DNA from: Thalia democratica | Lineage: Eukaryota | NCBI GenBank assembly: GCA_965202585.1 | Contig: OZ241826.1 | Location: forward strand, 26,412,001 to 26,476,000 | Reading direction: 5' to 3' | Length of the DNA: 64,000 bases | Shown: positions 22 to 62,173 of the stretch, piece by piece | Position numbering within the stretch: the stretch's first letter is position 1 | Layout: every line of letters starts with the position of its first letter | Notes under the pieces: generated by a model | Databases searched by the model: none | What the model saw: the letters and a program-made list of their open reading frames with translations, nothing else | Told to the model about the DNA's origin: nothing | Made by a program: the position numbers and the translations under genes

Positions 22-3000
22 AAAATCGAGGGAGCGTTGGAGCAGTACAAGGTGGAGGTGAAGCTGATGACGGTGGAGCACAAGAAGAAGTCGCTGGAGG
101 TGGAGAGGGACTTGGAGAAGGAGAAGATGTTGAGGAGGCAGCTCGCGCAGAAGTGCTTGGAGCAGGGCGAGGCGTTCGAGGTGCAGCAGAAGCTCGTGGG
201 GAGTTTGCAGCAGCAGGTTGATAGAAGATATATTGAAATACATTTAATTAATAAATAAGACCGAAGCTTTTGAGGTGCAGCAAAAATTAGTTGGAAGTTT
301 GCAACAACAGGTTTTAAATGATTGAAAAGTAAACAAAATAAATATTTATGAACGAGGATTTTGATCAATTAATAAGTTTTAAATGTAGCAGTAACTTGTT
401 AGAAGTTTGCAACAGCAGGTAAATAAAAGTGATTAAAAAATGTGTTTAATTAAAATATAATGTGTATAATTATGAACAACAGGTTTGGTTTTATTCAATT
501 AAAACAATTCATTTTGGTTAAAGTTAATAACTTAAATTACAATAAATAAGAAATTGGCTTTTGAGGTTCACCAGAAATTAGTTGGAATTTTGCGACAGCA
601 GATTGTGATTAGTAGCTGTAAAGTAGGATAACAGTTTTTTGTAAATCTTAAAGACATTTAAAACGAATAAAACTTCTTTTAGATGTTTTAATTAATATAA
701 TGTTTATTAATACTACAGTTTGTTTAAAATAAGTATCTATTGAAGTATGTAGCGACATGTTTGAATAAAATTGTAAGGTTAAACAATGAAGCTAAAGCTA
801 CTCAAAATTTTGTATGATTTTTTCTTTTATTTTTAAAATTTTTTGGTAAAAGCAGGTTTTAAAAGATTACTTATTACATTCAATAGTTGAATGAAATCAT
901 AAAGTTTATTGCGTATAAATTATTTCTTTTAATTAAGTTATTTAAGTCAATTCTTAAACATTATGTTATTAATTGCGTTAGAATGTTTAATTAAAGATGA
1001 GAAACTTGTTTGCTATAAATGTAGATACTGATAATTCTGTCTGCGTCATTACTTGCTTTGTAAAAATAAATCTCTAATTTTCAAATGTCAAGTAAGTATT
1101 AAAGCTTGTTGTAAAATCTATAGGTCATGACCCTAGACTTTTATAAAATACATTTTGAAATGAAAAACTTTTATGTTCAAATAGCTTCAAGAAGTTTTGT
1201 AAATTGTCAATAAAGATAATAGGAGTGTTTAAATAATGATTAAACTAGATTAATATTACTTTTTGTAAACGTTTAAAAATTTAATTTTATTAATGTTTCT
1301 TTAAAAATTATCAATAAGCTTAATTATTTCAATGATTTAAAAATAATCGAAAGTCAGTTCAAATTTACAAGTTTGTAACTTTTTTTTCTATCTTTATTTA
1401 AGAATACAACCAGCCATACAACAATAGTTTTTCACTACATTATTACTATATTTTATCAATAATACATCAAACATCTTATAGATTTCTATTATTAGTAGAA
1501 CTTATCTACTAGAAGATAAAATATTATTATTTTTATGCACCATGCTTGGCAAAGATTTTCAACTAGCTATAACAAAAAATAGTTTTTTTATAATTAAAGT
1601 GACCTGTATAACATTAAAAACATATAATTATAATTTATGAAAAAATTCAAGTATGTAGCAAATTTCAATTTAATTTGAAATTTTTTCAAATAAGTATTAA
1701 TATTATGAACTTTAATGAATTAGTAAACCTAAATTAACTAACCACAAGTAAAATGTTACCGAAAGTCTAAATAAACTCTGACTTTAAAGACTTTCTTTAA
1801 CATAGCATACGAAATAACCAATGTTTAGTAAAAATAAGATTTAGATCACCACTTGTGTTTTAATTTATATTATTTTTTAAATTAATAAATATTTCAACAA
1901 AGTTACTTTTTCAGCAAGCTTTATACATTATTAAAATTGTTGGTGTAACAAATTTAACAAGATCAGATAAAACAATGTTTCTTTAATTACCAACACTTGA
2001 AAAAAACTACAGTATACTAAAATAATTTTATTAAAAATAAACCCTCTATATTACACAGATCAAATTTTACGAAAAGAAGTTCGGTGAGGTGCAAACGATG
2101 CTGACCAAATCTCACGATACTTGCACGTCATTGGCCGATCAGCACGACAAGATGAAGAAACGCTTGAGCGCCGTCCAATCAGAAAGAAGCAATCTGCAGC
2201 ACAAACTCGAAGTGAAATCTAAACTCGCCAATCAGGCTATTAAACAGGTTTGTGGTTTTCAAACTAAGTTATAATACAAATTTGTTTATATTTTTAAAAA
2301 CGTTAAGAAATTGTAAGTTAAAAAAGTTGGTTTGTTTCATTGTTAATTTTTTATACAAGTTTTAAAAATCGTTTAATTAATGTAAAAGTTCATCTTTCAA
2401 ACTTCTGCAAACCTATGATGTAAAAAATGAGCTTATAAAACATTTTACTTAAAATAAAAAAAAATAAAATATTATTTAGGCCTTCACTAGGTGATTTTAT
2501 AGTTTTATTGTACATATTTTGATCATATAAAGTAATTCAATATTTATACTTTTATTATTAACAGATGTGTCAACAATATTTTGTAAAATTTAAAACTAAT
2601 GATTTTTTATTGCTGTAGTAATGTTACAGTTTATTAATATTAAACAGCTAAAACGAAGGATTGTATTTCAATTACTCCATCAATAAAATTTAAACTTTAA
2701 AATAACTAGTACTTTTGTATTATTGTTATAGAAACACAGTACATAGTGTTTTAGATTACACATACCAACTAATTTTCCGAGAGATACACTTTCTTTGTTA
2801 TTTAATAATAAACTGGATTTAATAATTATCAAAATATTAGACAGTTTATCTTTTAGACAGTTAACTTGTATTAAAAACTGTCTAAATGTGCCTTTTTGTA
2901 TTTGACATTTTATTTATACCAATAGAATATTTCTAGCTAAGTTCTCTCGTTCATGAAGCAAGTTTAGAATTAAAAAAGTTAGAAATTGAAAATGTATTTG

Positions 3001-19945: not shown

Positions 19946-19987
19946 TTCCAATATCAAAAAAAGACAAATCTACTGTTTTCTTAGTTT

Positions 19988-22900
19988 TCACTTTCCGAGC
20001 TCTCCCACCCTCTTGTAATGCTTTTGCTTCTTGGTCATGCCAAACTGCAGTTTCTGCTGTCTCCTCCTTCTACTCTGACCAACGTCCACCTTCACTACAT
20101 CCGGGTGCATTGGACTGATGAACTTGCCTGTAAAAAGTTTGTTAATCTAATTTTCGTTGTCAGGGTCGTAGGTTCAACAAGCCTTCGTTTGCTTGTTTGT
20201 TGATAAACACTAATTTTTGCTTACATTTTGACAAGAGTGATTTTCGTTATCTAAAACCAACTTGAATGTGTTTAAATCGTAAGCAAAATTTTTATGTTTG
20301 AAACCAGCAGCAATCTACGTCCCTAGTTGACACTGAATCGCAATGAATGTACTCGACACTAGATCTTTTTTCAAGATTATTTACTAAACAACAAACACAA
20401 CATGCACACCTGAAACAGTCTCGATCTTGGGCCGGTTGATCTTCTTGAGCGAGAGAGCCGTGTTGTACTGCTTCGCCACGGGGTAGTCCAGTGACCTCTC
20501 GAAGGCTGGGACGTCTCTGTGGTACTCCCACGGTATCTGCTGCACCTGTTTGCGCGTTGGTTTGTTCACGTTTGTTTGTTATGAAAAAAGTTGTTGTTAG
20601 AATAATGACAATAAGTTTTATGAGTAGTTTTGATGGGTAGGTTTATATTGCAAATATTAATAGTTACTTTATTAAATATATAATATTATTTTGAAAAAAT
20701 TAAAAAATAATAAGCTTAAAACAAATTTAATTAAAAAAAAATTAAGCTTCAAACAAAATTAATATAGAAAAAAAAGTTTTGATGTGCACTTCTAAACAAC
20801 TTCTCAATGAGAAACAAATAGTTTTACTCCAGTCATATACATTAAGAACTCAATAAAAACCTGCATCTTGGTCAAACCGAGATCTCTGTGCTTGGTCGGG
20901 ATCCACGCAAAACTCTTCCTCTCTTTCTCCACATCCCTCATCTTCCTCTTCTACAACATGAAACAACATTTGAAAACTTAATTTCAAACAAAAACTTCAA
21001 TTGTGTTTCGTTCTGCCATTCATGCAATGCAAACTTTACTTTTTTACACTTGAATACTTTATTTGACAAAAGCTTCGAAAATAATTAAATTTTCTCAAAA
21101 CAATCGTCGTAATAAAAAAAATCTTACAACATAATAAGAAAATTATTAAAATAATTATATCTAATCAATTTCCAACCAAACAACCTTGGCCTTTTTCTTC
21201 TTCTGGGTGATTCCTTCCCCCGCCCACCCGGTACCGAACCCCGGCATGTCCAGCTCCATCATCTCCTTCTCCCTCTTCCGCTCCTCCTCCTTCTCGTGCT
21301 CCCCCCACACGTCGTCCTCCTCGAACGCCTCCTCGATCAACCCCGCGTTCTTGTCTGGATTTGACAGTTTGATCATCATATATATAAATATGAGATTTTA
21401 CCATAAAATATGGTAAATTGGGGGCAAAAATCAAGGAAAGGTTTTCAGAAAAAGTCATTCTGAACTACAGTTGAGTAATTATTTTAGTTATTTTTAAATT
21501 TATGGTATTTAAACATTGTAAAGACTATAATGGGTAGATTAATTTCAAAGAGACAGCTAAGATATTTAATATGAAAATCACTCACCCGGAACGAAATCGT
21601 TCATGAGATCGTCCACTTCGCTCTGAACTTCCTTCCCTCCTCCCACGACGATCAGCTCCTCTTCACCGTCGCGCAACCTCACCGGTTTCAACACTTCCTC
21701 CTGCTGAGTCACTTGTTACAAAAACCGACAAGTCGCTGAATTGAGCGGTAAATTATCACGTTTGTTACTATGTGTTTTGATTTTTAGAGAACAAATAAAG
21801 ATATCTCAAATTTTTAAAAAGAAATTATATTTTTATTATTTTGCACAATAAAGTCTTGCAAGAAAAATATACATTTTTATAATGGAACACGTCGAAAATC
21901 CACCCAATAAAAATTCCACTCGGTCAAATTCGAGAACCGTTTTGCGACCGAGGGTTAGGGGTAACAGTGATAGTGAAAAATAAATAAATTCAAAAATTAT
22001 ATAAAACAAAATAATAAATAGATAAAACACAAAAAAATTGGGTGCATTTTGAACGTTAGAACATTTCGAAAGTACACCGTCATTACAACAAACCTTCCTT
22101 TGCACTGCCACCATCTTCGTTTCCCCCTCCCCGTCCAAACCGGCCTCCTCCGTCTCAACTTGCACCATCACCGTGTTCTCTTCCTTCTCTTCGGCTTCCT
22201 GCTCCTCCCTTGCCGCCTTCACCACCTCCTCTGCTGCTTGCAACGATTTCAGTGATTGCAACGCGCTGGTGAACTTTTGCTCGTTCCTGGCCGCTTCGTC
22301 GTCCTGAGCATGATTGTCTGCTTCTTCTTGACCTTTTTGGTTTTAATGAAAGATTTGAACTTGATTTGTGTATTTCATTGTTTACAAATTATAAAAACTT
22401 GGACATAGCCTTTAAATTTAACTTTAATCTGTTTAAAATTAGCCGTTTCAGATGTAAAATGACTGATTCTTAAAAAACTATAACTAAAAGTGGCTGTAAA
22501 GTTTTATTTTTAAAGTTAAATTGCAGATAATTTTTTAAACTTTCCAATTAATTGTTCTTACTAATCAAACAAACAAGAACAAATACAAACCTTCAGTCTC
22601 TTCACTGTCGTCTTGTTCAGCTGCCAGCCACTTGTTGTCTGATTTCAAAGGTTTTACTACCTCTTGTTGAACATCGTTACTTTCTCCTTCATCATCATCA
22701 TCTACTTCGGATTCACTGCTGTCACTTTCAACCTGATGAATAACTTCAAGTAAACTTTCTCAACTCCATTGAATTAAGAACCTTTACGTTATTTCTTAAA
22801 CTTCAACAAACACTCCATAATCATTTAGAACGAGCCATAAATCAATTGATACGATAAACACCAAACAAATCAAACACATTTTATATTTATCATTTTATTT

Positions 22901-25900
22901 AAGAAATTATAAGTACATTTTTTATTGTAACACACCTTTCTCTTCTTCATCAATTCCTTGTGCCGATCAGCTTCGGCATTCATCTTTTCCCTGACGTCCT
23001 CATTGTATTTGGCAATCTTCGCCTTGAATTTTGAATTTTGTTAGAAATTTTATGCATAAACCATTTTAAATTTTGAAGTAATTATTTAGTTTGTTACTTT
23101 ACTTCTATTTAGAATAAAGTTTCTAACCACTAACATCGTTGTATTTATTTAAAATTACATTGCAATATTCACCTTATTCTTATGCCATATTCCCGTCATG
23201 ATAAAATTGCTAATGACTAACATAAGAATAGAATAACTTAATTACACCTAAATAAATTACAACCCTAACCTTGTTCTTGTGCCATTTTCCCTGCCCCCGA
23301 TGAGCCAACGTAGCCCTCTCTTTGGCTCTCGCTCTCATGTGTTCCTCTTCCTCGTCTTCCTGATCTTCCTCGTCGCTCCCTTGCAGCTCCTTCAGCTTCT
23401 GCTGCTCCTGTTGGTTTTTTTTTCAGAATCACTAAATTTTATAGCTTAGTGCAGTATGTGTATTTATGTATAACTAGCTTGAAGCTTCATCAATTTCTTA
23501 TGATTTTTTTTAAATGTTGGATCTTTACAATTTACTATCATTTTTTTAAATTACCATTAAAATTATTAAATCTGTAGTAATTACTTTAAATAAATTGTAT
23601 TTTTAAAATTATGTTTGCTCGGATATCTTTAATAAAACAATGGTTTTTTGTTCATAAAAATTTAAAACTTAATAACAGAATAAACAACTTTATTTTTCAA
23701 AATTTCGTTATAAAAAAATATTTTTCGACCATTAAACAACAAAATGACCTTTATATTGTTCCAATCAATCATTATAAAAAAGTTAAACTTGTTTATGAAA
23801 TTATATATTCGAACCTTCTCTTTCTTCTTCCTCTGCACCCTCCTGAAGTTCTTGCTCTTGATCTTCTTGGTCCTCTTGTACATCTGCTGCATCCTTCCCA
23901 TGAAGACCCTGTTCTTCTGCAGCTGCTTCAGCCTCTCTCTCGCTTCCTGCTCGGACATCCTCTCTAGCGCCTCCTTGTCCCTCAGTGTCAGTCCCCGCCA
24001 CCTTTAATTAGTTTAAAGTTGTCCGGTTTAAATAGATAACGAACATAAGATAGGTAAACATTGTTTTACATAAAAAACTATTAAAAAAAGGACTTAAAAT
24101 AAAATAAATTAAAAATTTGAATAGCCATGCACCTTGCTACCCATAACATACCTGTGTAGTTATTACAATAAATAATAAACCAAAATGCGCTACATACCTG
24201 CCATGGTCGATTTCCTTGTCTTTCGGACCGTAAGTTGCCATCAGTTGGGCTTCCAAATCGCAAACGGGCTTCCTGGCTGTTGTGACTGTGTATTGGAGTA
24301 AAAGTTATTAGACAACCAAGAAATACATACGTACAAGATAAGCTTTTGAGAAGTTGAAATTAGAGTTTTTTTTTTTTGAAATTCTAACAATTTTAGTTAC
24401 TGATAATATAGGTTCACATGATAAAGATATACTAAAATAAAAAAGTTTAAAATCAAAGTGCTATAGTTCGATTTTAAGCATATTGAATGACCAAATCTCA
24501 AAAAAATCATTGAAAATACCTTACTCTATTGCCTGCAAAGTTATTTGTGGAAAAAAACTGTTTAAACTACAAAAACCAGCATTAATTCAAGTTCCATAAA
24601 CTTATAAGACTCCCTAAAACCAAAACATTAAAAATAAAAATTCCATACGACTAAAACCCCACCTCTCGAGTTTGCCCCCATCTTTCCCAGGTAGTTGCTC
24701 CTTAGCGGCTTCTGTTTTGGCGGGAACATTATGTGGTCTTCCCGCCACATCAGCTGGGCGTGATCGTCCCACTTGGAAGCTTCCTTGTTGTTTTTGATGG
24801 CGAGCGCCTTCATCTGCATGCGCTTCGACTCCGGCTTGCTCGGTTCGGCCTGCAACGTTTTCTTGTTCTTTTCAAGCATCTCCATCTTTCTCTTCATTTG
24901 GTCGCCTGAAAATAAGAAAGTTAATTCTAAACTCAAGGTTTTTTATTTGTTAAAGGATGAAAAATTATATTCATCAAATTTTAAAAAGTAAATAGTAACT
25001 GAATTTCTTTAATATATTCGACTAAAACACTTAACACTGTTTTTGTTATTCATATAAGAGAATAACTTTTTAACTGAAACTTCTTTAACTTAATTACTTT
25101 ACAACTTTAAATGATTAAACTTTTGTAATTAATAGTGTTCTTAGATTAGGTTTTGTGTTTAGTCTAATTTACACTTATTTATCATTTACAGTCAAAAACT
25201 TGCTATATAAAAAAGCAATAAGATTAATTAAACAAACTAATCGAATTATTTTCTAAAATAGAAGAAAACATAGCTTAGTTAAAGTTTAGTTCTGAAAAGT
25301 TAGTATCGTTTAACAAACTATAAAATAATATTTGTTTTAACGTTCTTGAACTATGATAAACAAGTTTAAGGGCATAGGGTAGTGTCTGACGATTATTTTT
25401 ACTAAAAATAACATTAAATCTTATATGAAAGCCACATATGAAAGTACGTACTACAAGCCAGTTTTTATAGAATTAAAAAATCATATTTAACTTTTGATAT
25501 ATTGTAATCTTTGTATAAAGCTTCTGATAATATGTTTAGACCGCAATTTTTTGTATTCAATATTCTCAGAAATTTGAAAAACCACTAAAAATCTATCTTC
25601 TTCTTTATTTTTTGAGCTAGAGACATCAGACTTTCAGGAAACGATCATTTTATAGTTTAAAAGGCTTTAAATGTTGCAACTTTCAAAATATGAAAAAATA
25701 TAATTTTTAGAATAAAAAAAAAAATAAAAAAGTTTTTTTTTTTATGAAAATTTTATTTTTCAAAAAGCGGTTTTAGTTTGTGCTTTCCATCAGAAACTTA
25801 TTAACATCACCGACTTTGATTGCTTTTATATCAAAAATTACTTTGAGTTTATTAAAGCGATTAAAAATGACTGATAGCGCAGATAAAACTGTATAAAATA

Positions 25901-27077
25901 AAATCAACTTGTAAAAATCAAGGTGATCACCCCCTATGCCCTTAAATCTTAAGCACATAGTTTCAAAACATTCTATTTAAAATGTTTAATTAATTTAAAT
26001 TTATAAAATAGTATTTTATTTTTTCAATAAAGCAAGACTAAATTAAAGGAAACCAGAAAAACTCATTTGGTGATAACATTAAATTATTGAAAAAAATACC
26101 AAAATTTGGAATGAAGTAAGAACCAAGCTTCAAAAAACCTATACACAAAATTGAATTAAGGACATAGGGGGTTATTCACTATTTTCACAATTTAGTCTTA
26201 TTTTAAAGAGTTTTAAATAAGCTACAAAATGCTTTTTACAGATTTTTAAAGTTTAAAATAGTATTTGAGACATAGCAGGCCAAAGTCAGGGGCAACATTA
26301 GGTTCCTTATGGGGGGTGCAAACTATAACCGCAAAAACAGTTTTGTTTTTTATCATAAAATTTTTATTTTTTTAATTTCTTCAAATTTTCTTTTGACAAA
26401 ATTTTCTAAATATTGCAAGAACCATTTCCTAAAAATTTGAGGTAGTTATCTTAAAAAACGTAGAAGATGAATTTTTAGTGATTTCTAGTTATTTGTTGTT
26501 TTAGTTTGCGCCCCCCATAAGTAACCAATTGTTGCTTCTGACTTTGACCTGCTGTATCTCAAAGATTTTTCTGAGTTTTAAAAACATGTAAAAAGCAACT
26601 TGAAGCTTAGTTAAAACTCAATAAAATAAGACTAAATTGTGAAAAGGTGATTTATCACCCTATGCCCTTAAATATGAAAGAATTTTGCTTATTTATGTAA
26701 ATTAATGAAAACATGATAAGGATCTAAATATCTTAAAATTTATGAAAACATAAAAGTTAAATGTACATTTTAAATGTAATAAATTCTGAAATTCTATAAT
26801 ATTAGTAAAAAAGTTATGAAGACTACTACAACAAAAAAAGTAAGCAATGAAACAAATAAAAGTTTATATTGACAACAACATTTTATAAATTATCTGTTTG
26901 CATATATTTATGCAATCTATAATAACGAAAACTATTAGTATATAAACAATTAAATCGCCTACCTTTAACATTTCCCTCTTCAAATATGTCACCAAAAGCA
27001 GTGTCACTTTCATTTAACACCGGACCGTCAACCAAAGTCCTGCGTCTTTTGTTAGTGGCTTGCTTCTCTTCCTCCTC
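19988..27077 (-). CDS. UTP14: U3 snoRNA-associated protein 14 (SSU processome), copy A; first coding exon(s) not located
   Basis: Exons in transcription order: 27077-26963, 24905-24663, 24285-24198, 24001-23815, 23407-23270, 23022-22936, 22732-22591, 22332-22094, 21700-21586, 21354-21185, 20950-20861, 20545-20410, 20127-19988 (TGA). All GT-AG, phases consistent, no internal stops. Motifs match UTP14: SKWDDHAQLMWREDHIMFP, MSEQEARERLKQLQKNRVFM...KKIKSKNFRRV, ERATLAHRGQGKW, LIEEAFEEDDV...LDMPGFGTGWAG, PWEY...FERSLDYPVAKQYNT...KINRPKI. Confidence 0.93.
21884..22078. mobile_element. About 195-bp MITE/HINE-like insertion specific to UTP14 copy A
   Basis: Absent from the paralogous intron (50160-50200). 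Subterminal inverted repeats cgtcgaaaatccacccaa (21890-21907) and ttgggtgcattttgaacg (22038-22055); internal agggttaggg (21951-21960). Confidence 0.6.
23171..23196 (-). repeat. Intronic echo of the 3' end plus donor of UTP14 exon 23407-23270
   Basis: Minus strand gga ata tgg cat aag aat aag|GTGAAT versus exon gga aaa tgg cac aag aac aag|GTTAGG; a related copy is present in paralog B (51272-51296). Confidence 0.7.
25370..25941. mobile_element. Kolobok-like MITE with TTAA target duplication
   Basis: TTAA|GGGCATAGGG...CCCTATGCCC|TTAA with long degenerate internal inverted repeats; also at 53384-53955 and 63385-63955. Confidence 0.75.
26160..26667. mobile_element. Kolobok-like MITE with about 170-bp TIRs and TTAA target duplication
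   Basis: TTAA|GGACATAGGGGG...CACCCTATGCCC|TTAA. Arms align as inverted repeats (ttttcacaatttagtcttatttt; gcagg(c/t)caaagtcag; cttatgggggg(t/c)gcaaact). Duplicate at 54174-54681. Confidence 0.85.
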
Positions 27078-30000
27078 CTTTACAATTTAAAGAGTTTATT
27101 TTTTTTTTACCTTAGGGGCAAAGAATTACAAATTGTTATTTTGGTCAAAAATGGACTAACTTTTACATATTCTTATTCAGAATAAATGTTCATACAACTA
27201 AAACTAATAACACACTTTCTAATTGGCTACAAGCTTGTGAATAACTTAGAATCATAATCTATTCAAAGAATTTTAAACTGAAAGATTTCAGCCCTTTTCA
27301 AAAATAAACTTTGACTTGTGATAGAATAAAATAATTAATAAAAATCACTTACAAAAATTATTGTATGATCTTGGGTTCCTCACTCCTATATCTTAACTCG
27401 GTTTCAGAAGGAATTGCATTTTCAAAACTAGATGTTTTCTTCAGATCAGCCTTCTCATAATACCATATAGGCTTGCTCAGTTCATATAAGGTTTTTTGGT
27501 GATGAGATTTAGTTGATTTTAATATATTTTCTGTTAGAAGTTTAACAATATTGTTAATACTAAGCTTTTACTTGTGTTGGGTACCTTGATGAAATTTTTC
27601 TGTTTACTTAAATTAATTTGTACTTTAAGATATTCATATAAATAGTTGTATGGTTTGCATGCTTCAAAGACTTAATTTAGTAAAGATTAATTTAAGTAGT
27701 TATAAGCACTAAAGTTCATATATATGAAACATTTTAAATACAGTTCACAAGTAGTTAATGTTCATAACTTTCCAAAACTAGACTAAGTTCTAAGATACAA
27801 TTTAGTCTAGCAACATAAGAAGTTTTTACAGCAGTATTATATCAATACTTATTTAGTTAATTAAAACAAATAAAGACTTTAGAAAAATTTAAACTTATCA
27901 TTTTTGTGGCTTAAAACTGAACTTGAAATATCATAATGTAATGATGGTTTTGTTTGATATAAAATATGTTTCACTCAAATATAAGTAGTTATTTTTCACA
28001 GTCATACAAAAATATTTTGTTAATTGTGTCTTTATTTAGCATTCACTCACTATGAACAATATGGCTTTTTGTTTTCTACCTGCTTTAAAAAGTTGTTACA
28101 TCAATGACTACAAAAACTCAGTAGTTTTGGCAAACATGGCAAAACGATTCGAACTAAATTATTACTGAAATGAGTTTGAAAAAGTTAAATGTAACCTGAT
28201 GAAATTAAAGGCTTTAAGCTAAATATATTAAATCTTATACAAATTGTTAGGTGTTAAACATCTTAAAAACAAATAAAAAACAATTTCGTAAAGTTTAGAG
28301 TTAAATACTTAATTCATATACTTAAATAAAGTTGTCAATGTAATTTATATGAGCATAATGAATTACTGTAGCTTAAATATTAAACAATACGTTTAACCAA
28401 CTATCACTAATGCAGTAAAAAAGGTAGAAATAAAGTTATGTAAAGTACTTTATGTTCAAAAAAGCTAAAAACCACCCTGCTATGCTAACATAGTGTTTCA
28501 ACTTGTAGTTTTTGATAAATTCTGTAAATTCTTACATTTTATTGTGACATCACACTAAAATAGTATTTTAGAAAATAATTTTTTTCAATGAAAATTCTTT
28601 TGAGAAAAGCACTTGTAGTAGTAAGAGCTCTGGATGCTGTAGGTGTAAATTTTTACTTTTTTTTCTTTTTTTATGCTGTTTATGTGAGCTTTGTGGAATA
28701 CTTAAGCAAACTCTATTTGATTATCAATACTGTTGAAGATAAAACTTGATAATTGTTGCTCATTTTATCTTCTATAATTCTTATTTTTCTTCACTGAGTG
28801 AGTGTAAGTTTAAGACCTAGTTTGGGAATCAACAGTCTTGAAAGTTTATGTTGATAATCTGTATTGTTTTTCTTATGCAAAACCTTTGAAATGACTCTTT
28901 ACTTTATCTTCTAATTCATCATATAAAGCACTTTTATATTTACAAGCATGACATGTTAAGAATGCACTTACATCATGCTAAAAAAGATCATCAAGAGGCT
29001 TTGAAATTTTGCATCTCAGTTTTTTTAATCTTTGAAACACCATTGTAAAGTGAACTGGGTAGAAAAAAGCTCAAAAAAATCTTTTTGAAAGTCTTTTGAA
29101 CCTCAGTAAAGTTTTAAAACTTCTGAGCTTGTTTCAAATCCTTTGTCTTTATACGTTGTTACTGTGACTTTTTCCTACATGCAGAGTTCAGATCACACTT
29201 CTTTGGATTCTGATTGGATGATGAGTACCTACTACAGCAGCTGTTGAGGTTAGTTTGTTTAATAGTTAATTAGATTGTTTTAATTTGTGCAAAACTTAGT
29301 ATTTTTTGCTATTTCAAGCAGCCAGACTAGTTGAGTCTCTAACAAAATTAAATATTATAGGATATTATAATAAATCTTAAAAAATTATATTTTCTACTTG
29401 TTAATTGGTGAGTCCTTTTGTCACTTAAAAATTTTTTGAGTGCTCATCCTTGAGTAACATTAAGCTTTAGATGTTATTTAAGTTTTGCACAAATTCAGAC
29501 TAGCACTTTCTATTCATGGAGTTGTAAACTTGGCTTATACCATAAACATATATTTGTCGTGTTGGGCTTCATTCTCCTAAAATTGCTAGGTTACCTTAAA
29601 AGAAAACTTAAATAAGGGAATAAATAAAATCATTAAAAAGTAGCAGCACTTGTGTTAAATTTTACAAGCTTGTATAAAGAAGTGTTGCATTCATGAATGA
29701 AGCCCAAAGAGACAGCAAGCTAAGTGTAGAAGTTTATTTACAGCATAAAATTTAAATTCTGGTTGTATTAATGTAGTTTATGTGTTCATAGATTAATAAT
29801 TTGTAATAAAAAGTACTTTTCAAAGTGTGCATGAAACATGTTAGGCAAGAGTAATTATAAAACAAATTGTTATTATTAATAAAATTTTTTACGAAAGAAA
29901 ACAGTTGAACCATATGAGGATTAAGTTTGCTAGTAAAAAAAGTTCCAAAATTTTAAGCTTACATTCATATATTTACAAAGCAGTTCACAGCAAGCAAAAT

Positions 30001-30919
30001 TTAAAAGTTGTTAATTCATATGTGTATGAGGATTGTTCTTACCTTTGTTTAATTTTTCTATTCTTCTATCATTAACTTCTTTCTCTTCTTTTATCTATCA
30101 ACAACTTCTTTTGTTCATATGTTTGCACTAATAAGCTTTTGACAACAACTTGCTGTACTGTTTTTTATGTATATGACAAATGTAAAGACTAAATTTTGGA
30201 ACAATATAAATATTAGTTAAATGGTGTTAAATGCAGAGTATTTAAGATGCAAGCATTTGAAAAACTTTGAAAAGAACTACATATGTTATTGACACAAAGT
30301 AGTGTGGTTTAACTGTTTTAGTTTGTAACAATGTATTGAGATGATAAATTCAAAACATCAAGCTCCTTTAATTTCTATGCACACTTAAAGAAACACACAA
30401 TATTGAGACAAACTTAACTGTCATGGAAAACTTTAGCTTATGTAAGATGATGACAAGTAAAATGATATACTGTAACAGTATAGAATCGAAGTTAAACAAA
30501 TTTACAGTTATTACTCAAATTAAAAAACTTTAAACTGTTTAGTCTAATCTCAAGCATTTATCTAATATTGAAAAATTTAAGATTTATACTGTTTTGAAAA
30601 GGTTACTAATTAAAATCAATTTACATAAGCAAGTTAAGTGACTGTTGTTTAAATATACATAGGATACAGTTCAATCATATAAATAGATTTGTCAATGTAC
30701 ACATTTAGACTCATATTATTCTTTCTATTTTTATTTGGTACATTTTGTCATAAAAAAGTACACTTATCTATGATATTGATGAACTGTTTTCTATGTATTT
30801 GTAAAATATTAGGTAACTAAGTAGGATGATGTAATATCTGAAACTATATTCATTAAATTTAGGCTCTCTAAACCATAACCATTAAGTGTGTGGTTTTAAC
30901 AAAATAAATACATCTCTAA

Positions 30920-31600
30920 GGTACGCATTTTAAGGAGTACGCACTAGTTTTTTAATAGAACCTTTTCTGTTGCAACTATAGGTTTTCTTTAAAGAGTACG
31001 CACCACCCGCACAAGGTACGCGATAAATTTTACGGCCCGCCACCCATTTTTTCAATATGGGGAATCCCCCAAACCGAAAATCGATGGGAAATTTTTGATG
31101 AAGATTATTTAAAATAATTTTTTTAAGGCATTTCGCCGGCTCCGCGAAATTTTTCACATTTTTCCTTTTCCCTTTTTCTCCACGGCCTTTTTTCTTGAAG
31201 GCCACCTTTTTCTGTCAAATGGACCGTGAGTAGCGTAACTGCCAAACAAATGTACGTTTGTATATTTGTACGGTCTTTATCTGTTATCTTTTACTAACCT
31301 TGAGCTTATGTGATCTAACTTATCAGTGTATAACCATTAAAGGCCTGACGGTAATATCGGTTGATAGTTTTTTAGTTATTGACTGAGTGGTTTTATATTG
31401 GTGAGTTTGATTAGTAAGTTTATAGGTAGCGGACAAGAATTAAAAAAAAACAAAGGGCTACGGCCGGTCGATGACACGGTGCTTCGCACCTGTCATCTCC
31501 CCGGCCTGCCCTTAGTTTTTTTTTAATTCTTGTCCTTTAGGCCCGGCCACTATGCTGGTCGGCACCTCCTTGAGTTATGACTTGGATGTACGAGTAAATG
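30920..31600. promoter_or_regulatory. GC/CpG-rich island upstream of UTP14 (candidate promoter, or TE-derived)
   Basis: Abrupt rise in CpG after a 3.8-kb CpG-poor block; four GTACGC motifs; contains a 105-bp palindrome. Function not demonstrated. Confidence 0.3.
31431..31535. repeat. 105-bp near-perfect palindrome (hairpin/cruciform)
   Basis: ggacaagaattaaaaaaaaac-aaagggc-tac-ggccgg-tc-gatgaca-c-ggtgc TTC gcacc-tgtcatc-tcc-ccggcc-t-gcccttag-tttttttttaattcttgtcc; duplicated at 59445-59549. Confidence 0.85.
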
Positions 31601-32590
31601 TGCTAGTACTTCTAAGTCACAACTAAACTTTATTTTCACTAGAAGTTATTAGATAGAACAGACTAATTTTAGTATTTAAATTAATTAACAGATATAAATT
31701 AATATGAGCCACTTGTTTTCTGCAAACTATTTACGTCTTAATTTGTCCACACAAAATTAGGTAAATTTACAAATTATTTGCGTTAATCGTACAATAGTAA
31801 ATAAAATAATTTCTTCTTAATTTGTCCACATAAAGGTAGGAAATTTAAAAAATAATCTGCATCAATTATACGAACTTTTCTTTTTCAGCTATTTTTTCAC
31901 ATTAAGTCCTTAAATTTTATTTTTATTTTACCGTATTGTTACGTCATAATAAGTCTCTTTTTTTAATAATTTATTAGGGTTTTGCTTCTTATGTAATATG
32001 CACGCAAGTTATATTTATAAACTATCTTTTAAAGCAAATAACTTTCTAATAATGGATGAATAACATCAAGATTTACTAGTTTATTTTTATGTATAACTTC
32101 TTACTCATCCTTTAATTAGATCTAACAGACAAACTTTGTTTACTTGTACTTCAAACTTCCTAGATTCCGTTGATCAACCTTGTGTATATTCTAAAGTGTT
32201 AGTTCATTTAAACAACTTGCTTTAATTTTTTTTTTGTGTTTTCGTCTGTTGTAGTTGCCATGTTTCTTATTTATTGGTTGTTTATGATTGCAGGGATGCT
32301 TGCTACCACTTACATATGCATAATAAGCAATGAATAACATATTTTTTAATAAATTTCTTGTATTTAAGCATATATGGTAACCAACTAGTAATGTTTTATT
32401 GCCTGGTCTCGTTTGACTTAGTTCAAACGAGTGAAACATTATTTTATTAACAAAATTTATGATATTGAATTGATTGTTCTCCTTATTATTTAGTCAAAAA
32501 CTTTTATTGTGATCTATATTGTAAAAAGTTCACAATACTTTATTGATACTAATAACTACTTTTTATGTTTATTGTAAAATTTAGATCATG

Positions 32591-32880
32591 CCGGGTTGCC
32601 GAAAAACCTGGAACTTGTGAAATTTTGAAAAAACCTTGAATTTTAAACAATTTTTACATGTTAAGTAGTAAAATTTTGATTCGACGCGAACAATCTATCA
32701 AATGTATAAATACTTTTTGTCATCTATAATTATTTATTTTAAAATACATTTAAAGTAGCTTCACAGTAATGTTGTTTTACTGTTTAACACAGTTTTTTTA
32801 CGTTAAACTTAACTTTTAATTAAAAATAGACCAATAAACGTGTAATTTGAAAATCTAGAAGAAATCCTGTTGCAACCCTG
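32591..32880. mobile_element. Non-autonomous hAT-like MITE (CAGGGTTGC TIR)
   Basis: ccgggttgcc...tgcaaccctg; flanks atcatg/atcata; homologous to 3309-3699 and 7874-8163; duplicated at 60605-60894. Confidence 0.7.
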
Positions 32881-33689
32881 ATCATAAGTCTTGATTTGAT
32901 GAAATTAATTTTGATATTAAACAATCGTTATTGTTTGTTTTCCTACTATTTTAATTTGATAGAGCAGTGTTTCTTAATTAAACAGTTTTGTTCATATAAT
33001 TTTGTACACTCCCTTACTAAACTTAAGTTAAACAAATATTCAAACTAAAACCAACTCTTATGGTTTTATCATTGATTATCATCTTGTTGCGCTTGTTTTA
33101 ACTGTTATATCTATTGCATTAAAAAATATTTATTTCACTCGAAATTCAATGAGATAAAATGTCTATTTAAAGTTACCATCCCGTTTTAAAAAGTATAGTT
33201 TCACGGTCTGTACTACACTTAACCGTTATATACATGGTACCACAAAATCAGGAAAAAGTAGGGGTTTTTAAAAATGTCATGAAATTTGATATAAACATGC
33301 TGTTAATATGAAAGCTTATCATCACTATAAACTGCATTTTGAGAATGTTACTTCCAAAAAAAATTGCACTTCATTTTTTTTCAAGGTTTAGTTGAATTTT
33401 TGGAACAAATTAAAATCTTCTATGACCTCATGTGTGTATTTATTATGTGGTAAAGATACAAGTATTTTGCTTGTAGAGCTTTTTATTGCGTATACATTAA
33501 TAATATACATATGATTCAAATAGTGCAATGGAAAACTTATATGATTGAATCATAAACTGTTGTTAAAACTTATAAAAAACTAAGATTAAAAATTTCACAT
33601 AATTTCAAGTCATTGTTTATGTATTTTTGAATTAAATCCAAAAATCCGTAAATTTTTTTCAACTCGATATGTGACAACCTTGTATATGT

Positions 33690-36600
33690 TTACATTATAA
33701 AACTGTCTCTACCTAAACTAAAAATGGCGAATTGACCAGCTTCAAATAATTGTTTTCTAACTGAACACAGTTACGCCAATTAAGTAACTGTTTTATTTTT
33801 GAGGTCTTGTTTATAATTTTTTAAGAATAGTTTTTGTAGTACGATTAAGCAAAGTTTTTTTTTTGTATACAAGAATGAGCATATTATACTTACTTGTCTT
33901 GTCAAAATTATATTTTTGCTTAAAAGCATTTAGTATCCTCAAATTCGTATGTTTGTAATGCGTCTACATTTAATTGAAAGATTTTATATTTTCTTACTGA
34001 TTTAATCTATGTAAACACAAGGGTACACTTGTCTTAAAACTGTAGTTTACGCTTGGGCTTTATGTAGCCCAACTAGCTCGTTTCTACTATTTCTTTATTT
34101 AGTCTACTACTATTATTCTTATCTTTTATTGAACTTTCAAGTCGTTTTAAAAGGTTAGTTTTGGTAGATTTTTTTAAGGTAAGTTGTGTATTCTGCCTTA
34201 ATTACGTAAGAAGTATCGATAAAGTAATGTAATCATAGCATCATAAAAAATATTGGATAAGGTGCCTCTTAATTAAATAACACATATGTATGTGGCAATT
34301 AACTCTTTTTTTTATTTAATTGCTGCGTATTTAATTAAACTAGTATCAAAATTACAATAAATTCTTAATACTTAATCATTAATTTTTATCATTTTGTGCT
34401 GGTTTATATGATTATTTCTAGTTTTATGTCACAAACAACATATATTTATCTTTGAATTTAAAAAATTAAACTGTTTCTTTCAAGTAATAATTACAGTTGA
34501 AATACACTTAGAGGCTTTATAAGTTTAAAGGTTTTGTTTTTCAGCTGTAATTTATGTTGTGCCATTTAAGCCAAACTTTTGGTCTACAAGGTTGTGTTTA
34601 CCAAACATTATGTTTGCTAATGTCTTATCTAAGCACAAACTTGCTGTTTAGTAATTTAAAAGAATTAAATCTCCCTAGTTCGTATTTTTTTAAAGCGCAT
34701 CTATTTAAAATAAGTATTTTATTGCTTAGCCATAACACTGTTCATATTTCAAATAACAAAGGCATTTTACCTATGTAAATCTTTCAACTTAGATCATCAG
34801 TTTGGTTTTAATTGTCTAATTAAACAATCAATTAATAGCTAATTATCACTAATTCGCCCTTTTATTAACTTATTTTTCTACATTAACTATTTATTTTATA
34901 CTAATCACTTTGATAGAAAAGTATTTCTTAAGTAAACAATTAAGTATGCATTCAGTTTTAAACAATACCTTACCGCGCTGAAGATTAATTTATGTTATAA
35001 TTACTTTCAATTCTTAATATATAATCTTTGATTTTATTCTTAATTAATCTTAATAACTAATTTTGTTGCGCTGCTTTATATGGTTATTTCCAATTTTATG
35101 TTTTAAACAATAAACGGTCTGTATTAAATTAAATCGTTATGTATGACTTTATTTTACACTAATATATATAACTCTAAACCAAATACTGGCGAAGTTATAA
35201 AACTGTGCCGATTAAGTAAACATTTCAATTTTGAGGTCGTATTTTGTTTTTTTCAACTTGTTTAGTTGTTTTTGGTGGTTTTTTAGTATAAGATTGTATA
35301 TACTATGGTCTTATTTTCTGTCAACTAATTTGAAAACTTCCTTAGTTTTACATGTTCTAAAGCTCGTCTACTTGATTTAAACTTTTTAAAACATATTTTT
35401 TTTTACAGTTCTTTTTTGAAATCTTTATATAAAGAAAGGTTAGAAAACGGTGAAGTAAATTTATTTAGTTTTAATTTATTTATGGGTCAATCTAAGTCTT
35501 ATCAATCAAAAACGGATCATGTTTTAGTGATTGTTTCATTATTATTACTGTAGAATACTTGAAAGTTTGTTTAAAAAAAATTGGTTTTTCATGAATTTGT
35601 TCTAAAGTTTGTTTATAAGTCTAATTCGTTATTATGTTCTAAATTTAATTTTTTCTTGATTTAATTCTACTTCGATAAATTTTGGTTTAAAAGTGAGTTT
35701 TATATTATAAAGTTTGTTTTACTCATGGTTTAGATATATTTTTAGTTAACACTTCATTGTTTTGTTCATGTTACTGTAAAATAACTTTGCAATTTAAATA
35801 CCAAGGTTATTTGGAAACTTTTCCACGGGTTCTCTTTAGTTAATAATATTTGTAAATAGTTTTAGTTCTTTTAAGTGCAAGTAATTTTGCACAATAATTT
35901 TCAATCAAGTTCAAATTTCTCATAATAAACGTCTTTGTTTGTCCACATAAAATTGTATGCATTATTAAAGTAACGAAATATCTTTTTTTATCCATATAGT
36001 TTAGGTGTTTTAGTTGAAATTTATTTGGTCTTATTACACACTATTATTACGTCATCATATAGTCTCATTAAGTGTGGTAGTTTTCTCTACATTAACATAT
36101 GCTTTAAAGTGTCAAGATGTATTGATGAAGAGCTTTTATTAATGTTTTATCATTCAAGTTTTAGTATTTTCTTAGTTATTGCATTGTTATTCGTATGTTA
36201 ATTATTACACTTATTTTTGTTAATTATTAATCATCTGTAGAACTACTTGGTTGGTTTGATTTTGGATGCAATTAAACGTTAGGTTATTAGAAATCTATGA
36301 TGTGTTTTTACTTAATTTAAGTGAAGCAGTTGTTTACGGATTTAATACTAATTTCCTTTAATTTCACTTCATAACTACAAATAATCCTGCTTGTAACTAC
36401 CTTATCTACTTAGACTATTTACTCTACATCTAGTTTTACTAAAAAAGTATGTTTATTACCATATAAAATTCAACTGAATCGCTAAATCTAGTTTTAAAAT
36501 GTCTGCAACATACTTGCTTACCTTACAAATTATTCACTAGAGATTTTAGTTTTAAATGAACCAAATTTTAATAAGCGTATAACGTTCAATTGATAATGGT

Positions 36601-47800: not shown

Positions 47801-48347
47801 AAGTCTAAATCAACTTAGCTTTTGTAAATAGAATAATAATTAAAGTACCAAATATATTTTTTGTACTTTAAACTAAAAACACCTCAATCAAATAACCATG
47901 TTTTATAATCAGTGGTAAAAACATTAATTTTTCTAAGACAAATAAAACGATGTTAAAAACGTACATAAACAATTCTAACCTATAAATATTAGCCTATTAA
48001 AGTTTCTAAAATCATTATATAACTGAATCAACGTGTAAATAAAAATACAAGATTGTCTTCCACAAAATATCAAATAAGTAATTTGAGATAAAATATTCAT
48101 CAAAACATTTTGTTTTTTTTTTATGTGAAAACATTATTTTAAACAACATTTACTATAGTAAGTAATATAAAGCTTTAAAAATGTTAATAGTAAAACTGTG
48201 ATAGCTTAAACATATAAAACTGTTTATAGCAATTAAAACTAAATATTCTTTAAACTACTTGCAATAAAAAACTAAACTATAATAGTATATACTTCAAATT
48301 TATTTTCTAACATCAAAAAAAAGACAAATCTACTGTTTTCTTAGTTT

Positions 48348-51300
48348 TTACTTTCCGAGCTCTCCCACCCTCTTATAATGCTTTTGCTTCTTGGTCATGC
48401 CAAACTGCAGTTTCTGCTGTTTCCTCCTTCTACTCTGACCAACGTCCACCTTCACTACATCCGGGTGCATTGGACTGATGAACTTGCCTGTAAAAAGTTT
48501 GTTAATCTAATTTCCTTTGTCAGGGTCGTAGGTTCAGCAAGCCTTCGTTTGCTTGTTTGTTGATAATCATTAATTTTTATTTTGACAAGAGTAATTTTCG
48601 TTATCTAAAACTAACTTTAATGTGTTTAAATTGTAAACAGAAAAAAAAAATGTTTGGAACCGGCCGTAATCTACTAGTTGACACTGTATCGCAACGAATG
48701 TGCTCGACACTAGATATTTTTTCAACCTTTTTAGATTATTTACTAAACACAAATACAACGTGCATACCTGAAACAGTCTCGATCTTGGGCCGGTTGATCT
48801 TCTTGAGCGAGAGAGCCGTGTTGTACTGCCTCGCCACTGGGTAGTCCAGTGACCTCTCGAAAGCGGGGACGTCCCTGTGGTACTCCCACGGTATCTGCTG
48901 CACCTGTTTGCGCGTTGGTTTGTTTACGTTTGTTTGTTATGATGGCAAAAAGGAGCTTTTAGAACTAGCTTATAATTAAATATATAATAGTTTTAATAAT
49001 AAAATAATAATAAGCATAAAACAAAATTAATAAAAAAAAAGCTTTGATGCGCACATTGTAGCTATTTCAGCAACTTCTAAATGAGAAACAAATAATTTTA
49101 CCCCAGCCATATACATCAAGAACTCAATAAAAACCTGCATCTTGGTCAAACCGAGATCTCTGTGTTTGGTCGGGATCCACGCGAAGCTCTTCCTCTCTTT
49201 CTCCACATCCCTCATCTTCCTCTTCTACAACATAAAACAACATTTGAAAAACTTAATTTTAAACAAAAACTATTTATTCGATTGTTTTTTCGTTCTGTAA
49301 TTCATGCAATGCGAACTTTACTCTTTTTAACTTGAATACTTTATTTGACAAAGGTGTCAAAAATAAATATAAAGTTCTCAAAACAATTGCCGTGATAATA
49401 AAAATCTTACAACATATCAAGAAAAATATAAAAAAATAATCATATTCTAATCAATCTGCAACCAAACAACCTTGGCCTTCTTCTTCTTCTGGGTGATCCC
49501 TTCCCCCGCCCACCCGGTACCGAACCCCGGCATGTCCAGCTCCATCATCTCCTTCTCCCTCTTCCGCTCCTCCTCCTTCTCGTGCTCCCCCCACACGTCG
49601 TCCTCCTCGAACGCCTCCTCGATCAACCCCGCGTTCTTGTCTGTGGAAAAAAATTGAACATCATGTATGGGTTTTACCAAAAAATATGGTAAATTGGGGG
49701 CAAGTGAAAAATCAAGGAAAGATTTCTAGAAAAAGTCATTCTAAATTGAAGTTAAACAATTTTTTGAAACATTTTTAAAATTTCATCGTATTTAAACGTT
49801 GTAAAGTTTATAATTTAACTTCAAAAAGACAGATAAGATATTTAATATAAAAAGCACTCACCCGGAACGAAATCGTTCATGAGGTCGTCCACGTCTTCCT
49901 CAACCTCCTTCCCTCCTCCCACGACGATCAGCTCCTCTTCACCGTCGCGCAACTTCACCGGCTTCAACACTTCCTCCTGCTGAATCACTTGTTACAAAAA
50001 ACAAACAAGTCGCTGAATTGAAACTATCACGTTTGAGAATCATGAATACGTTTGTTGTTATGTGTTTTGATTTTAAGAAAACAAACAAAGATGTCTCAAC
50101 TTTTAGAGAAGAAATTATACATTTATTAGTTTGAACAACAAAGTTTATTTTTTTTAAGATTTAATTTATACAAATTAATATTTCCTTATCGTCATCATAA
50201 CAAACCTTCCTTTCCACAGCCACCATCTTCGTTTCCCCCTCTCCGTCCAAACCGGCCTCCTCCGTCTCAACTTGCACCATCACCGTGTTTTCTTCCTTCT
50301 CTTCGGCTTCCTGCTTCTCCCTGGCCGCCTTCACCACCTCCTCTGCTGCTTGCAAGGATTTCAGTGATTCCAACGCGCTGGTGAACTTTTGCTCGTTCCT
50401 TAACGCTTCGCTGTCCTGAGCATGATTGTCTGCTTCTTCTTGACCTTTTTGGTTTTAATGAAAGTTTTAAATTTCATTCGAGTATTTTATTATTTACAGA
50501 TTATAAAAACTTGGACATAGCCTTTAAATTTAACTTTAATCTGTTAAAAATTAGAATTTTCAGATGTAAAATAACTGATTCTAAAAAAACTAAAATTGGC
50601 TGTAAAGTTTTAGTTTCAAAGTTAAATTGCAAATAATTTTTTAAACTTTCTAATTAATTGTTCTTATTAAACAAACAAGAACAAATACAAACCTTCAGCC
50701 TCTTCACTGTCATCTTGTTCAGCTGCCAGCCACTTGTTATCAGACTTCAGCGGTTTCACAACCTCTTGCTGAACATTGTCATTTTCTCCTTCATCGTCGT
50801 CGTCTTCCTCCGATTCACTGCTGTCACTCTCAACCTGATAAATTTTTTTAAGTAAACTTTCTAACTCCATTGAATAAAGAACCTTTACGTTATTTTTTAA
50901 ACTTCAACAAACACTTCATAAACATTTTGAACGAGCCATCAAATCAATTGATGCGATAAACACCAAACAAACCAAACACATTTTATACTTATCATTTTAT
51001 TTAAGAAATTATAAATACATTTATTATTGTAACACACCTTTCTCTTCTTCATAAGTTCCTTGTGCCGGTCGGCTTCGGCGTTCATCTTTTCCCTGACGTC
51101 TTCATTGTATTTGGCAATCTTCGCCTTAAATTTTGAATTTTGTTACAAAACTTATGCATAAACCATTTTAAATTTTGAAGTAATTATTTAGTTTGTTACT
51201 TAACTTCTATTTAGAATAAAGTTTCTAACCACTAACATCGTTGTATTTATTTAAAATTACATTGCAAAATTCACCTTGTTCTTCTGCATTATCCCGTCAT

Positions 51301-54300: not shown

Positions 54301-55091
54301 CAGGGGCAACATTAGGTTCCTTATGGGGGGTGCAAACTATAACCGCAAAAACAGTTTTGTTTTTTATCATAAAATTTTTATTTTTTTAATTTCTTCAAAT
54401 TTTCTTTTGACAAAATTTTCTAAATATTGCAAGAACCATTTCCTAAAAATTTGAGGTAGTTATCTTAAAAAACGTAGAAGATGAATTTTTAGTGATTTCT
54501 AGTTATTTGTTGTTTTAGTTTGCGCCCCCCATAAGTAACCAATTGTTGCTTCTGACTTTGACCTGCTGTATCTCAAAGATTTTTCTGAGTTTTAAAAACA
54601 TGTAAAAAGCAACTTGAAGCTTAGTTAAAACTCAATAAAATAAGACTAAATTGTGAAAAGGTGATTTATCACCCTATGCCCTTAAATATGAAAGAATTTT
54701 GCTTATTTATGTAAATTAATGAAAACATGATAAGGATCTAAATATCTTAAAATTTATGAAAACATAAAAGTTAAATGTACATTTTAAATGTAATAAATTC
54801 TGAAATTCTATAATATTAGTAAAAAAGTTATGAAGACTACTACAACAAAAAAAGTAAGCAATGAAACAAATAAAAGTTTATATTGACAACAACATTTTAT
54901 AAATTATCTGTTTGCATATATTTATGCAATCTATAATAACGAAAACTATTAGTATATAAACAATTAAATCGCCTACCTTTAACATTTCCCTCTTCAAATA
55001 TGTCACCAAAAGCAGTGTCACTTTCATTTAACACCGGACCGTCAACCAAAGTCCTGCGTCTTTTGTTAGTGGCTTGCTTCTCTTCCTCCTC
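48348..55091 (-). CDS. UTP14: UTP14 copy B (intact frame; the 5'-most exon and most of the second are probably copy-A sequence mis-joined)
   Basis: Exons 55091-54977, 52919-52677, 52301-52214, 52026-51840, 51508-51371, 51124-51038, 50834-50693, 50444-50206, 49976-49862, 49640-49471, 49224-49135, 48903-48768, 48487-48348 (TAA). Same exon lengths and phases as copy A; no stops or frameshifts found. Confidence 0.9.
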
Positions 55092-62073: not shown

Positions 62074-62173
62074 NNNNNNNNNNNNNNNNNNNNNNNNNNN
62101 NNNNNNNNNNNNNNNNNNNNNNNNNNNNNNNNNNNNNNNNNNNNNNNNNNNNNNNNNNNNNNNNNNNNNNNNN
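62074..62173. other. Assembly gap (100 N)
   Basis: Exactly 100 N, the usual placeholder for a gap of unknown size. Confidence 0.98.

Follow-up and report, generated by a model that had tools for sequence, protein, structure and literature searches.

An intronic copy of a taxilin exon end in Thalia democratica probably keeps older silent codons that the live exon has exchanged for G/C-ending synonyms

How does an intron come to hold a copy of the end of the preceding exon that differs from it at 11 nucleotides and encodes exactly the same peptide? The question is raised by the taxilin gene of Thalia democratica, part of which lies at the start of a stretch of 64,000 nt (assembly GCA_965202585.1, OZ241826.1:26,412,001-26,476,000, forward strand), here called the window. 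Coordinates are window positions, equal to L007 positions minus 2300, with negative numbers lying upstream of the window; a slash within a sequence marks an exon boundary or an exon junction. The end of a taxilin exon recurs, in whole or in part, in four copies in the following intron, named U1 (263-310, plus GT), U2 (354-418), U3 (474-486) and U4 (554-601). A first-pass annotation of this DNA had proposed that the nearest copy, U1, is either a translated 51-nt cassette exon or a fossil of the ancestral exon, the functional exon having been driven to a high proportion of G/C at third codon positions (GC3). We consider it probable that U1 mostly keeps older silent codons and that it was the live exon end that shifted to G/C-ending ones.

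The exon segment 169-216 and the copy at 263-310 both encode EAFEVQQKLVGSLQQQ, and GT comes next in both. There are 11 nucleotide differences between them, lying within 10 codons and falling on first, second and third codon positions 1, 0 and 10 times respectively, and all are synonymous; translation and comparison confirmed what the first-pass annotation had said of the shared peptide, the common CAG/GT and the silent nature of the differences. That annotation had argued against neutral AT-ward decay from about 14 G/C bases at codon positions 1 and 2 of the exon segment; the count is 15, equal to the 15 at position 3, and the argument itself stands. When sets of 11 substitutions were simulated, 0 of 100,000 came out all-synonymous, whatever the AT bias tried, so that the simulation of AT-biased decay, named beforehand as the check that could overturn the claim, did not yield 11 of 11; moreover, the hypergeometric probability that at least 10 of 11 G/C-to-A/T changes fall on third positions is 8.5e-4. 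Neutral decay of the present-day exon as the origin of U1 is rejected by both tests.

The splicing of the region was read from two RNA runs, one a marine metatranscriptome (X1) and the other from the organism of the window itself (X5), the joints being taken from assembled contigs, which drop rare isoforms; 44 further joints stand outside those listed. The prerequisites of a cassette exon are present in U1 as had been claimed: an AG at 258-259, a 43-nt gap before it, 51 nt of open, in-frame sequence, and CAG/GT at 310/311. Joints 1023>2322 and 2516>4359 (L007 coordinates) were recovered in both runs and connect exon 22-216 with an upstream exon whose end lies 1298 nt away and, downstream, straight with 2059; the latter joint, 216>2059, is carried by 2 contigs in X1 and 3 in X5 and is the only donor-side joint of this exon among those listed. 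No listed joint leads into or out of U1 in the contigs of either run, which rare forms could escape, nor was the would-be 43-nt intron (217-259) seen spliced in them, and in two runs the mean RNA depth of the bin holding U1 does not exceed what the last 11 exon bases would contribute by themselves. The known introns of the gene measure 241-2260 nt, against the 43 nt that the cassette would require. In the spliced transcripts of two relatives, L010 and L011, the junction reads ...QQQ/IKFYEKKF and ...QDQ/VKFYESKF respectively, with no insert; among relatives compared by genomic sequence, the orthologous copy in L008 is broken after 13 nt by a repeat (L008:422-546) with more than 1000 candidate matches in this genome at 80-89% identity, and L009 has no copy in the 280 nt of intron examined. 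Together with the in-frame stops of the sister copies, these results leave nothing in the data that supports a cassette exon at U1, that half of the earlier proposal. Two other roles were also set aside: as a recursive splice site U1 fails, the join of 216 to 260 giving CAG/AC with no regenerated donor, and read-through to the second donor is ruled out by an in-frame stop at 253-255 and by a length of 94 nt, which is not divisible by three.

The codons of the relatives bear on which of the two sequences has changed. In the last 16 codons of the exon GC3 reaches 0.94 in this genome and 0.88 in both L008 and L009, against 0.44 in L010 and 0.50 in L011. The A/T-ending codons of the L010 exon, at positions 1, 3, 7, 8, 9, 14 and 15 (GAA, TTT, CAA, AAA, CTT, CAA and CAA), coincide with 7 of the 10 positions at which U1 is A/T-ending and this exon is not. 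Codon 11, where the amino acids are different, was excluded, and over the other 45 sites U1 has 5 differences to the L010 exon and 10 to its own; GCT of U1 is found in L009 and its GTT in L011. Codon 8 is AAA in the relatives L008, L009 and L010 alike and AAG in this genome, which marks AAG as the derived state. Of the silent third positions compared with L010, 8 of 15 differ in the last 16 codons versus 4 of 44 in the first 49 (Fisher P 8e-4), the eight being without exception G/C here and A/T in L010; in other exons the silent divergence to L010 is about 0.25. The exons of L008 and L009 are 95% and 82% identical to that of this genome, and the tree built from the first 147 nt is (L011,(L009,(L010,(L008,this genome)))). 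Between the spacer 217-262 and L008:360-408 the alignment has 33 matches and 10 mismatches, and both meet the next copy at the same junction, which places the duplication before the L008 split. As a separate observation, over the whole taxilin coding sequence 47 silent third positions are G/C here and A/T in L010 and 14 are the reverse, a general compositional shift between the two lineages that reaches beyond the exon studied.

The exon itself is exceptional within its gene. Its GC3 is 0.95, versus 0.36-0.59 in the six other exons; GC in the flanking introns is 16-24% as far as the splice sites themselves, the exon is purine-rich with 58% GC, and no other coding-like island in 84 kb approaches this composition. 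GC3 of the first 49 codons (22-168) lies at 0.86-0.96 in all five taxa, down to 54% protein identity. The remainder of the gene has a GC3 of about 0.32-0.59, and the G/C-rich zone of L011 runs into the codons of the next exon (about 181-340). Third positions of exon 22-216 are also unusually constant: compared with organism C (contigs of run X7) none of 54 differ while the introns differ by about 9-10% (P 0.006), a contig over 38-200 showing four differences and none at a third position; compared with L008, 2 of 62 differ in codons for the same amino acid while introns differ by about 15% (P 0.003); and compared with L009 the figure is 5 of 53. We infer that the force responsible is selection on the pre-mRNA or mRNA of this exon, or on its splicing, rather than biased gene conversion, which as a regional process would also raise the flanking introns; translation-driven codon choice is likewise unlikely, since its effect would extend to every exon. 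The idea that the birth of decoy copies triggered the G/C hardening of the exon end was weakened by L009, which is G/C-rich without a visible copy, and by exon -2168..-2061, whose donor end was copied and which has no G/C enrichment.

U1 is not the only copy. Local alignment of the exon end against the intron returned long copies at 262-322, 384-429 and 556-605, the best reverse-strand score being far lower; what is repeated, at 263-322, 384-429 and 556-605, is 169-216 with its GT and a few further bases, so that the first unit extends from exon into intron. Units measure about 94 nt, with a spacing of 65-118 nt and about 6-15% decay; a AATAAATAAGA-like tail precedes both U1 and U4, the similarity of the intronic parts does not exceed that of shuffled AT-rich sequence (z at most 2.3), and Tandem Repeats Finder reported no array at 169-650, the copies being too diverged. 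For the 12-nt match of U3, the chance expectation in AT-rich intron is about 4e-5 by our own estimate. The first-pass annotation had described a second echo at 557-604 with the same A/T codons as the first: this copy, U4, does have GCT, TTT, AAA, TTA, GTT and GGA of U1, but its register is 554-601, its donor GT is lost, and it lacks GAA and two of the three CAA codons (positions 7 and 15). It also carries three amino-acid-changing substitutions and a decayed first codon. Seven A/T states are common to U1, U2 and U4, all at third positions (P 0.003 for an origin by neutral decay in an ancestor common to the echoes). Private codon changes in U2 and U4 together are 1 silent and 10 non-silent, versus 10 and 0 for U1 against the exon (Fisher 3e-5 on our tally); U2 and U4 have 6-7 private changes each per 48 nt (about 13-15%), U1 three.

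A mutational hotspot at third positions, whether context-dependent or of the ultraviolet type, was considered and dropped, because changes private to U2, to U4 and to the remaining echoes lie on all codon positions; the classical TC context of ultraviolet damage would moreover strike the first-position G of GAG, which is found untouched. The changes of U2, U4 and the echo at -1981..-1930, spread in this way over the codon, indicate that there is no such hotspot and that copies are not protected in general.

Copying of exon edges extends to other parts of the gene, beyond what the first-pass annotation described: U2, U3, three echoes of the exon start and an echo of a further exon at -1981..-1930 are additions to it (Table 1). 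Three of the 14 exon edges of the taxilin gene are copied, each scoring above every shuffled control. The nearest exon-start copy (-158..-127) is identical over 32 nt and, with its upstream flank, is the positional orthologue of the real acceptor of L008; the 144 nt that separate it from the exon, before the acceptor in use, are unique in the genome. From these two facts it follows that the acceptor moved to a downstream copy, and a transposon origin of the 144 nt was rejected on account of their uniqueness. The oldest of the upstream echoes shows the kind of decay expected of a pseudo-exon. In the echo at -1981..-1930 the intronic part after GT is identical at 15 of 16 positions, and the codon CTT is that of the living codon in L010, the exon of this genome having CTC. 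A high-copy repeat with word depths above 150,000 in run X7 occupies L007:1838-2171 (about -460..-130) in the same upstream region. A search of the 800-Mb genome for a paralogue that might have served as source matched only the exon and U1, so a paralogue as donor of the A/T-codon copy was rejected; the degenerate codon pattern of the segment gave 0 matches in JGI metagenome contigs. Of the words sampled from the stretch, 0.92-0.95 were present in two DNA-like runs from the same organism, among which the source of the assembly itself may be.

Table 1. Position of the taxilin exons, the copied segment and its copies (window coordinates; L005 coordinates in brackets).
Feature	Position	Strand	Description
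Taxilin exon	22..216	+	65 codons, phase 0; GC3 0.95; acceptor cag 19-21; donor CAG/GT at 216/217; RNA joints
Last 16 codons of the exon (copied segment)	169..216	+	G/C-ending throughout except AGT
Intron start	217..262	+	46 nt between exon and U1; in-frame stop 253-255; AG 258-259
Copy U1	263..312	+	16 codons, same peptide, plus GT; GC3 0.31 over all 16 codons, 0.33 without codon 11
Copy U2	354..420	+	354-365 and 383-418 around a 19-nt insertion; GT 419-420; in-frame TAG and TAA
Short copy U3	474..486	+	GAACAACAG/GTTT; 12-nt exact match (475-486) to U1 303-314
Copy U4	554..603	+	Codons in register 554-601 (codons 2-16 at 557-601); donor GT decayed to AT at 602-603
Next taxilin exon	2059..2247	+	63 codons; GC3 0.59; RNA joint from 216
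Exon-start copies with acceptor, upstream intron	-158..-127 (L005:9842-9873); -520..-489 (L005:9480-9511); about -719..-695 (L005:9281-9305)		First ~30 nt of the exon
Donor-end copy of exon -2168..-2061	-1981..-1930 (L005:8019-8070)		Five differences; codon changes 2 silent and 2 non-silent

Seven exons joined give a single open taxilin frame, the full-length orthologous proteins P0003 and P0004 carry PF09728 (Taxilin), and exon 2059-2247 matches positions 213-267 of that family at E 2.6e-6, a match short of the whole-protein cut-off, as a lone exon can be expected to give. A whole-genome search with PF09728 returned nothing, even at the known exons, which reflects the sensitivity of the search and not absence, and Rfam gave no match in 1-2400 at E up to 0.1. 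The gene also includes a 42-nt micro-exon at -1819..-1778 (L007:481-522), confirmed by RNA joints on both sides. Elsewhere in the window, a segmental duplication of about 14 kb pairs 19956-34059 with about 48300-62060 at an offset of 28.0-28.35 kb and is nearly identical over 23.6-34.1 kb; it ends near an assembly gap (N run 62074-62173), and a further piece is repeated at an offset of about 10 kb (52171-54000).

The course of events that we favour would start with small tandem duplications across the donor site, which copied the last 48 nt of the exon and the start of the intron into the intron; the copies would have been copied again to give four, and the spliceosome, staying on the first donor, would have left them as silent DNA. 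At the birth of the founding copy, codon usage in the last 16 codons would have been ordinary, with GC3 near 0.5 like the rest of the gene. Later, the lineage leading to this genome would have exchanged almost all A/T-ending codons of the segment for their G/C-ending synonyms, bringing it into a hyper-GC3 state, held by constraint, that the first 49 codons already had, and U1 may have added a few G-to-A or G-to-T changes of its own, silent by chance. Most of the 11 differences would then be silent because they arose on the side of the exon, where only silent changes survive. This account rests directly on the copies and their anatomy, the junction in use, the codons of the relatives, the derived AAG and the constancy of third positions; the direction of the changes other than AAG, and the speed of the shift, we infer. 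Except for AAA, the exon end had its present form when L008 split off, at about 8% per lineage; essentially all of the shift thus precedes the splits from L008 and from organism C (covered to position 200), and it is not recent. In this respect the fossil proposal of the first-pass annotation needed amending, and also in that some of the differences are probably decay of the echo; in essence it was supported, given the 7 of 10 positions matched in L010 and the derived AAG. As a rough estimate, 6-10 A/T-to-G/C replacements would have occurred at about ten sites within a few per cent of neutral divergence, which would roughly amount to a replacement rate at least an order of magnitude above neutral and opposite to the mutational bias.

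Several observations weigh against this account. U1 itself is unchanged at 32 first and second positions although it is older than the L008 split (P about 0.07 at 8% per site, 0.02 at 11%), and all three G-to-A changes private to it are silent (P 0.04) and lie where L010 also has A. The shared states of the copies conflict, TTA uniting U1 with U4 while sites 7 and 15 unite U2 with U4; this conflict shows a history with exchange between them. The G/C-rich end of L009 requires either a parallel shift or a reversal in L010, two steps either way, and since both are equally costly the direction of the shift rests partly on the echo itself. The distant L011 gives no polarity for the sites at which L010 differs, its G/C and A/T counts being 3 and 2 in the last 16 codons and 12 and 9 in the rest. 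Finally, the copy in L008 starts GAG GCG TTT, which indicates that GCT in the copies of this genome is probably decay of the echo and not a fossil state; the GTT and TTA steps of the copies are probably also their own decay, at sites that happen to be silent.

The cleanness of U1 would find an explanation if the copy were held at the amino-acid level, either as a rare 51-nt cassette or through occasional swaps between copy and exon end by unequal crossing-over that kept only silent variants; its closeness to the L010 exon end would be explained as well, and taken as a whole we regard this as improbable. In its narrower form, U1 would be, now or until recently, a rare cassette (260-310) behind a 43-nt intron, drifting silently to A/T and free of the force that acts on GC3. 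The 10 silent and 0 non-silent codon changes of U1 while its sister copies decay at random speak for it, as do a copy cleaner than its minimum age predicts (P 0.02-0.07), the AG, the open frame and the intact CAG/GT; set against it are the absence of a listed joint and of RNA depth in two runs (with the limits of contigs and of the 44 unlisted joints), the transcripts of L010 and L011, the interrupted copy of L008 and the 280 nt of L009, the intron lengths of the gene, and the seven A/T states that dead copies also carry, so that we hold this form to be quite unlikely. Plain decay of a G/C-ending copy, all-silent by chance and picked out as a striking case, with L010 relaxing independently at the same two-fold sites, is equally hard to credit. 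Exon-edge copies are common, as the 3 of 14 edges in this gene attest, two-fold sites leave A/T as the fixed outcome, the overlap with L010 is only weakly significant (P about 0.08-0.1, hand calculation) and the changes TTC-to-TTT and CTC-to-CTT are CpG transitions; the simulation (P below 1e-5), the 8.5e-4 obtained even when only G/C-to-A/T changes are allowed, and the demonstrably derived AAG all tell the other way.

Two further explanations invoke exchange between different sequences. U1 could have been born different, through unequal exchange between silently diverged versions of the exon, either deep alleles in a highly diverse species or an introgressed L010-like one, and its being nearer to the L010 exon than to its own speaks for such an origin. 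We think it unlikely: differences in 10 of 16 codons far exceed any plausible allelic divergence, L010 having diverged by only about 0.25 at silent sites of ordinary exons; GCT, TTA, GTT and GGA of U1 are shared with U4 and not with L010; and no A/T-codon variant of the exon end occurs among the listed variants of four runs. A swap in a single step, in which crossover or conversion replaced the exon end of one lineage (L010 capturing a copy, for example) or a G/C-rich template overwrote that of this genome, would account for the coincidence of the anomalous L010 divergence with the copied 48 nt, 8 of 15 against 4 of 44, and fits the exchange that the conflicting states of the copies indicate. 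The genome holds no G/C-rich paralogue, a capture still requires a copy that had previously changed only silently, and L011 shows the same dip in GC3 with no known copy; a single swap is in our judgement very unlikely.

If U1 does keep the older codons, the copies are dated snapshots of the silent sites of an exon, kept within the intron of the same gene. They would record how a single 48-nt segment lost most or all of its A/T-ending codons to G/C-ending synonyms while neutral copies changed by about 6-15%, under a strong exon-specific force on silent sites in a genome with introns of about 22% GC, whose cause could be splicing or another function at the RNA level. Should other exon-edge copies in the genome behave alike, the evolution of silent sites could be polarised and timed genome-wide without outgroups.

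Repeats that span a splice boundary are known. In human F7 a 37-bp variable number of tandem repeats (VNTR) minisatellite of intron 7 has its first unit across the exon 7-intron boundary; splicing takes the most upstream donor, and for that reason the pseudo-donors are silent (PMC1557585). The taxilin locus is alike in that the repeat begins in the exon, an authentic donor is followed by silent pseudo-donors, and the upstream-most donor (here 216/217) is used; unlike the identical units of F7, the unit here is about 94 nt, the copies are decayed with a codon-position pattern and one pseudo-donor is lost, and the taxilin exon has copies of its acceptor edge as well. Introns can also be created by tandem duplication of a segment containing AGGT (PMC3265369), a case being that of potato RdRp (PMC4974935). 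Common to both situations are a small tandem genomic duplication that includes splice-site sequence and a spliceosome that picks among the duplicated signals; here, however, an existing donor was duplicated and an existing intron lengthened, with no new intron. Unprocessed pseudogenes and pseudo-exons serve as fossils in which a non-functional duplicate keeps ancestral states and polarises the changes of the working copy. U1 resembles them in carrying states of orthologous working exons, and differs in being a 48-nt fragment in the intron of its own gene and in that its signal is turnover of silent sites, not loss of function; the decay pattern of pseudo-exons is present in U2, U4, the oldest upstream echo and the echo at -1981..-1930, U1 being without non-silent change. 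A difference in GC between exon and intron aids exon definition in genomes with long AT-rich introns. With 58% GC in introns of 20-24% and sharp edges, exon 22-216 shows such a difference, although it is the only one of its gene with a GC3 of 0.95. What the locus would add to the known boundary-spanning repeats is the copy as a fossil that exposes fast, exon-specific change at silent sites.

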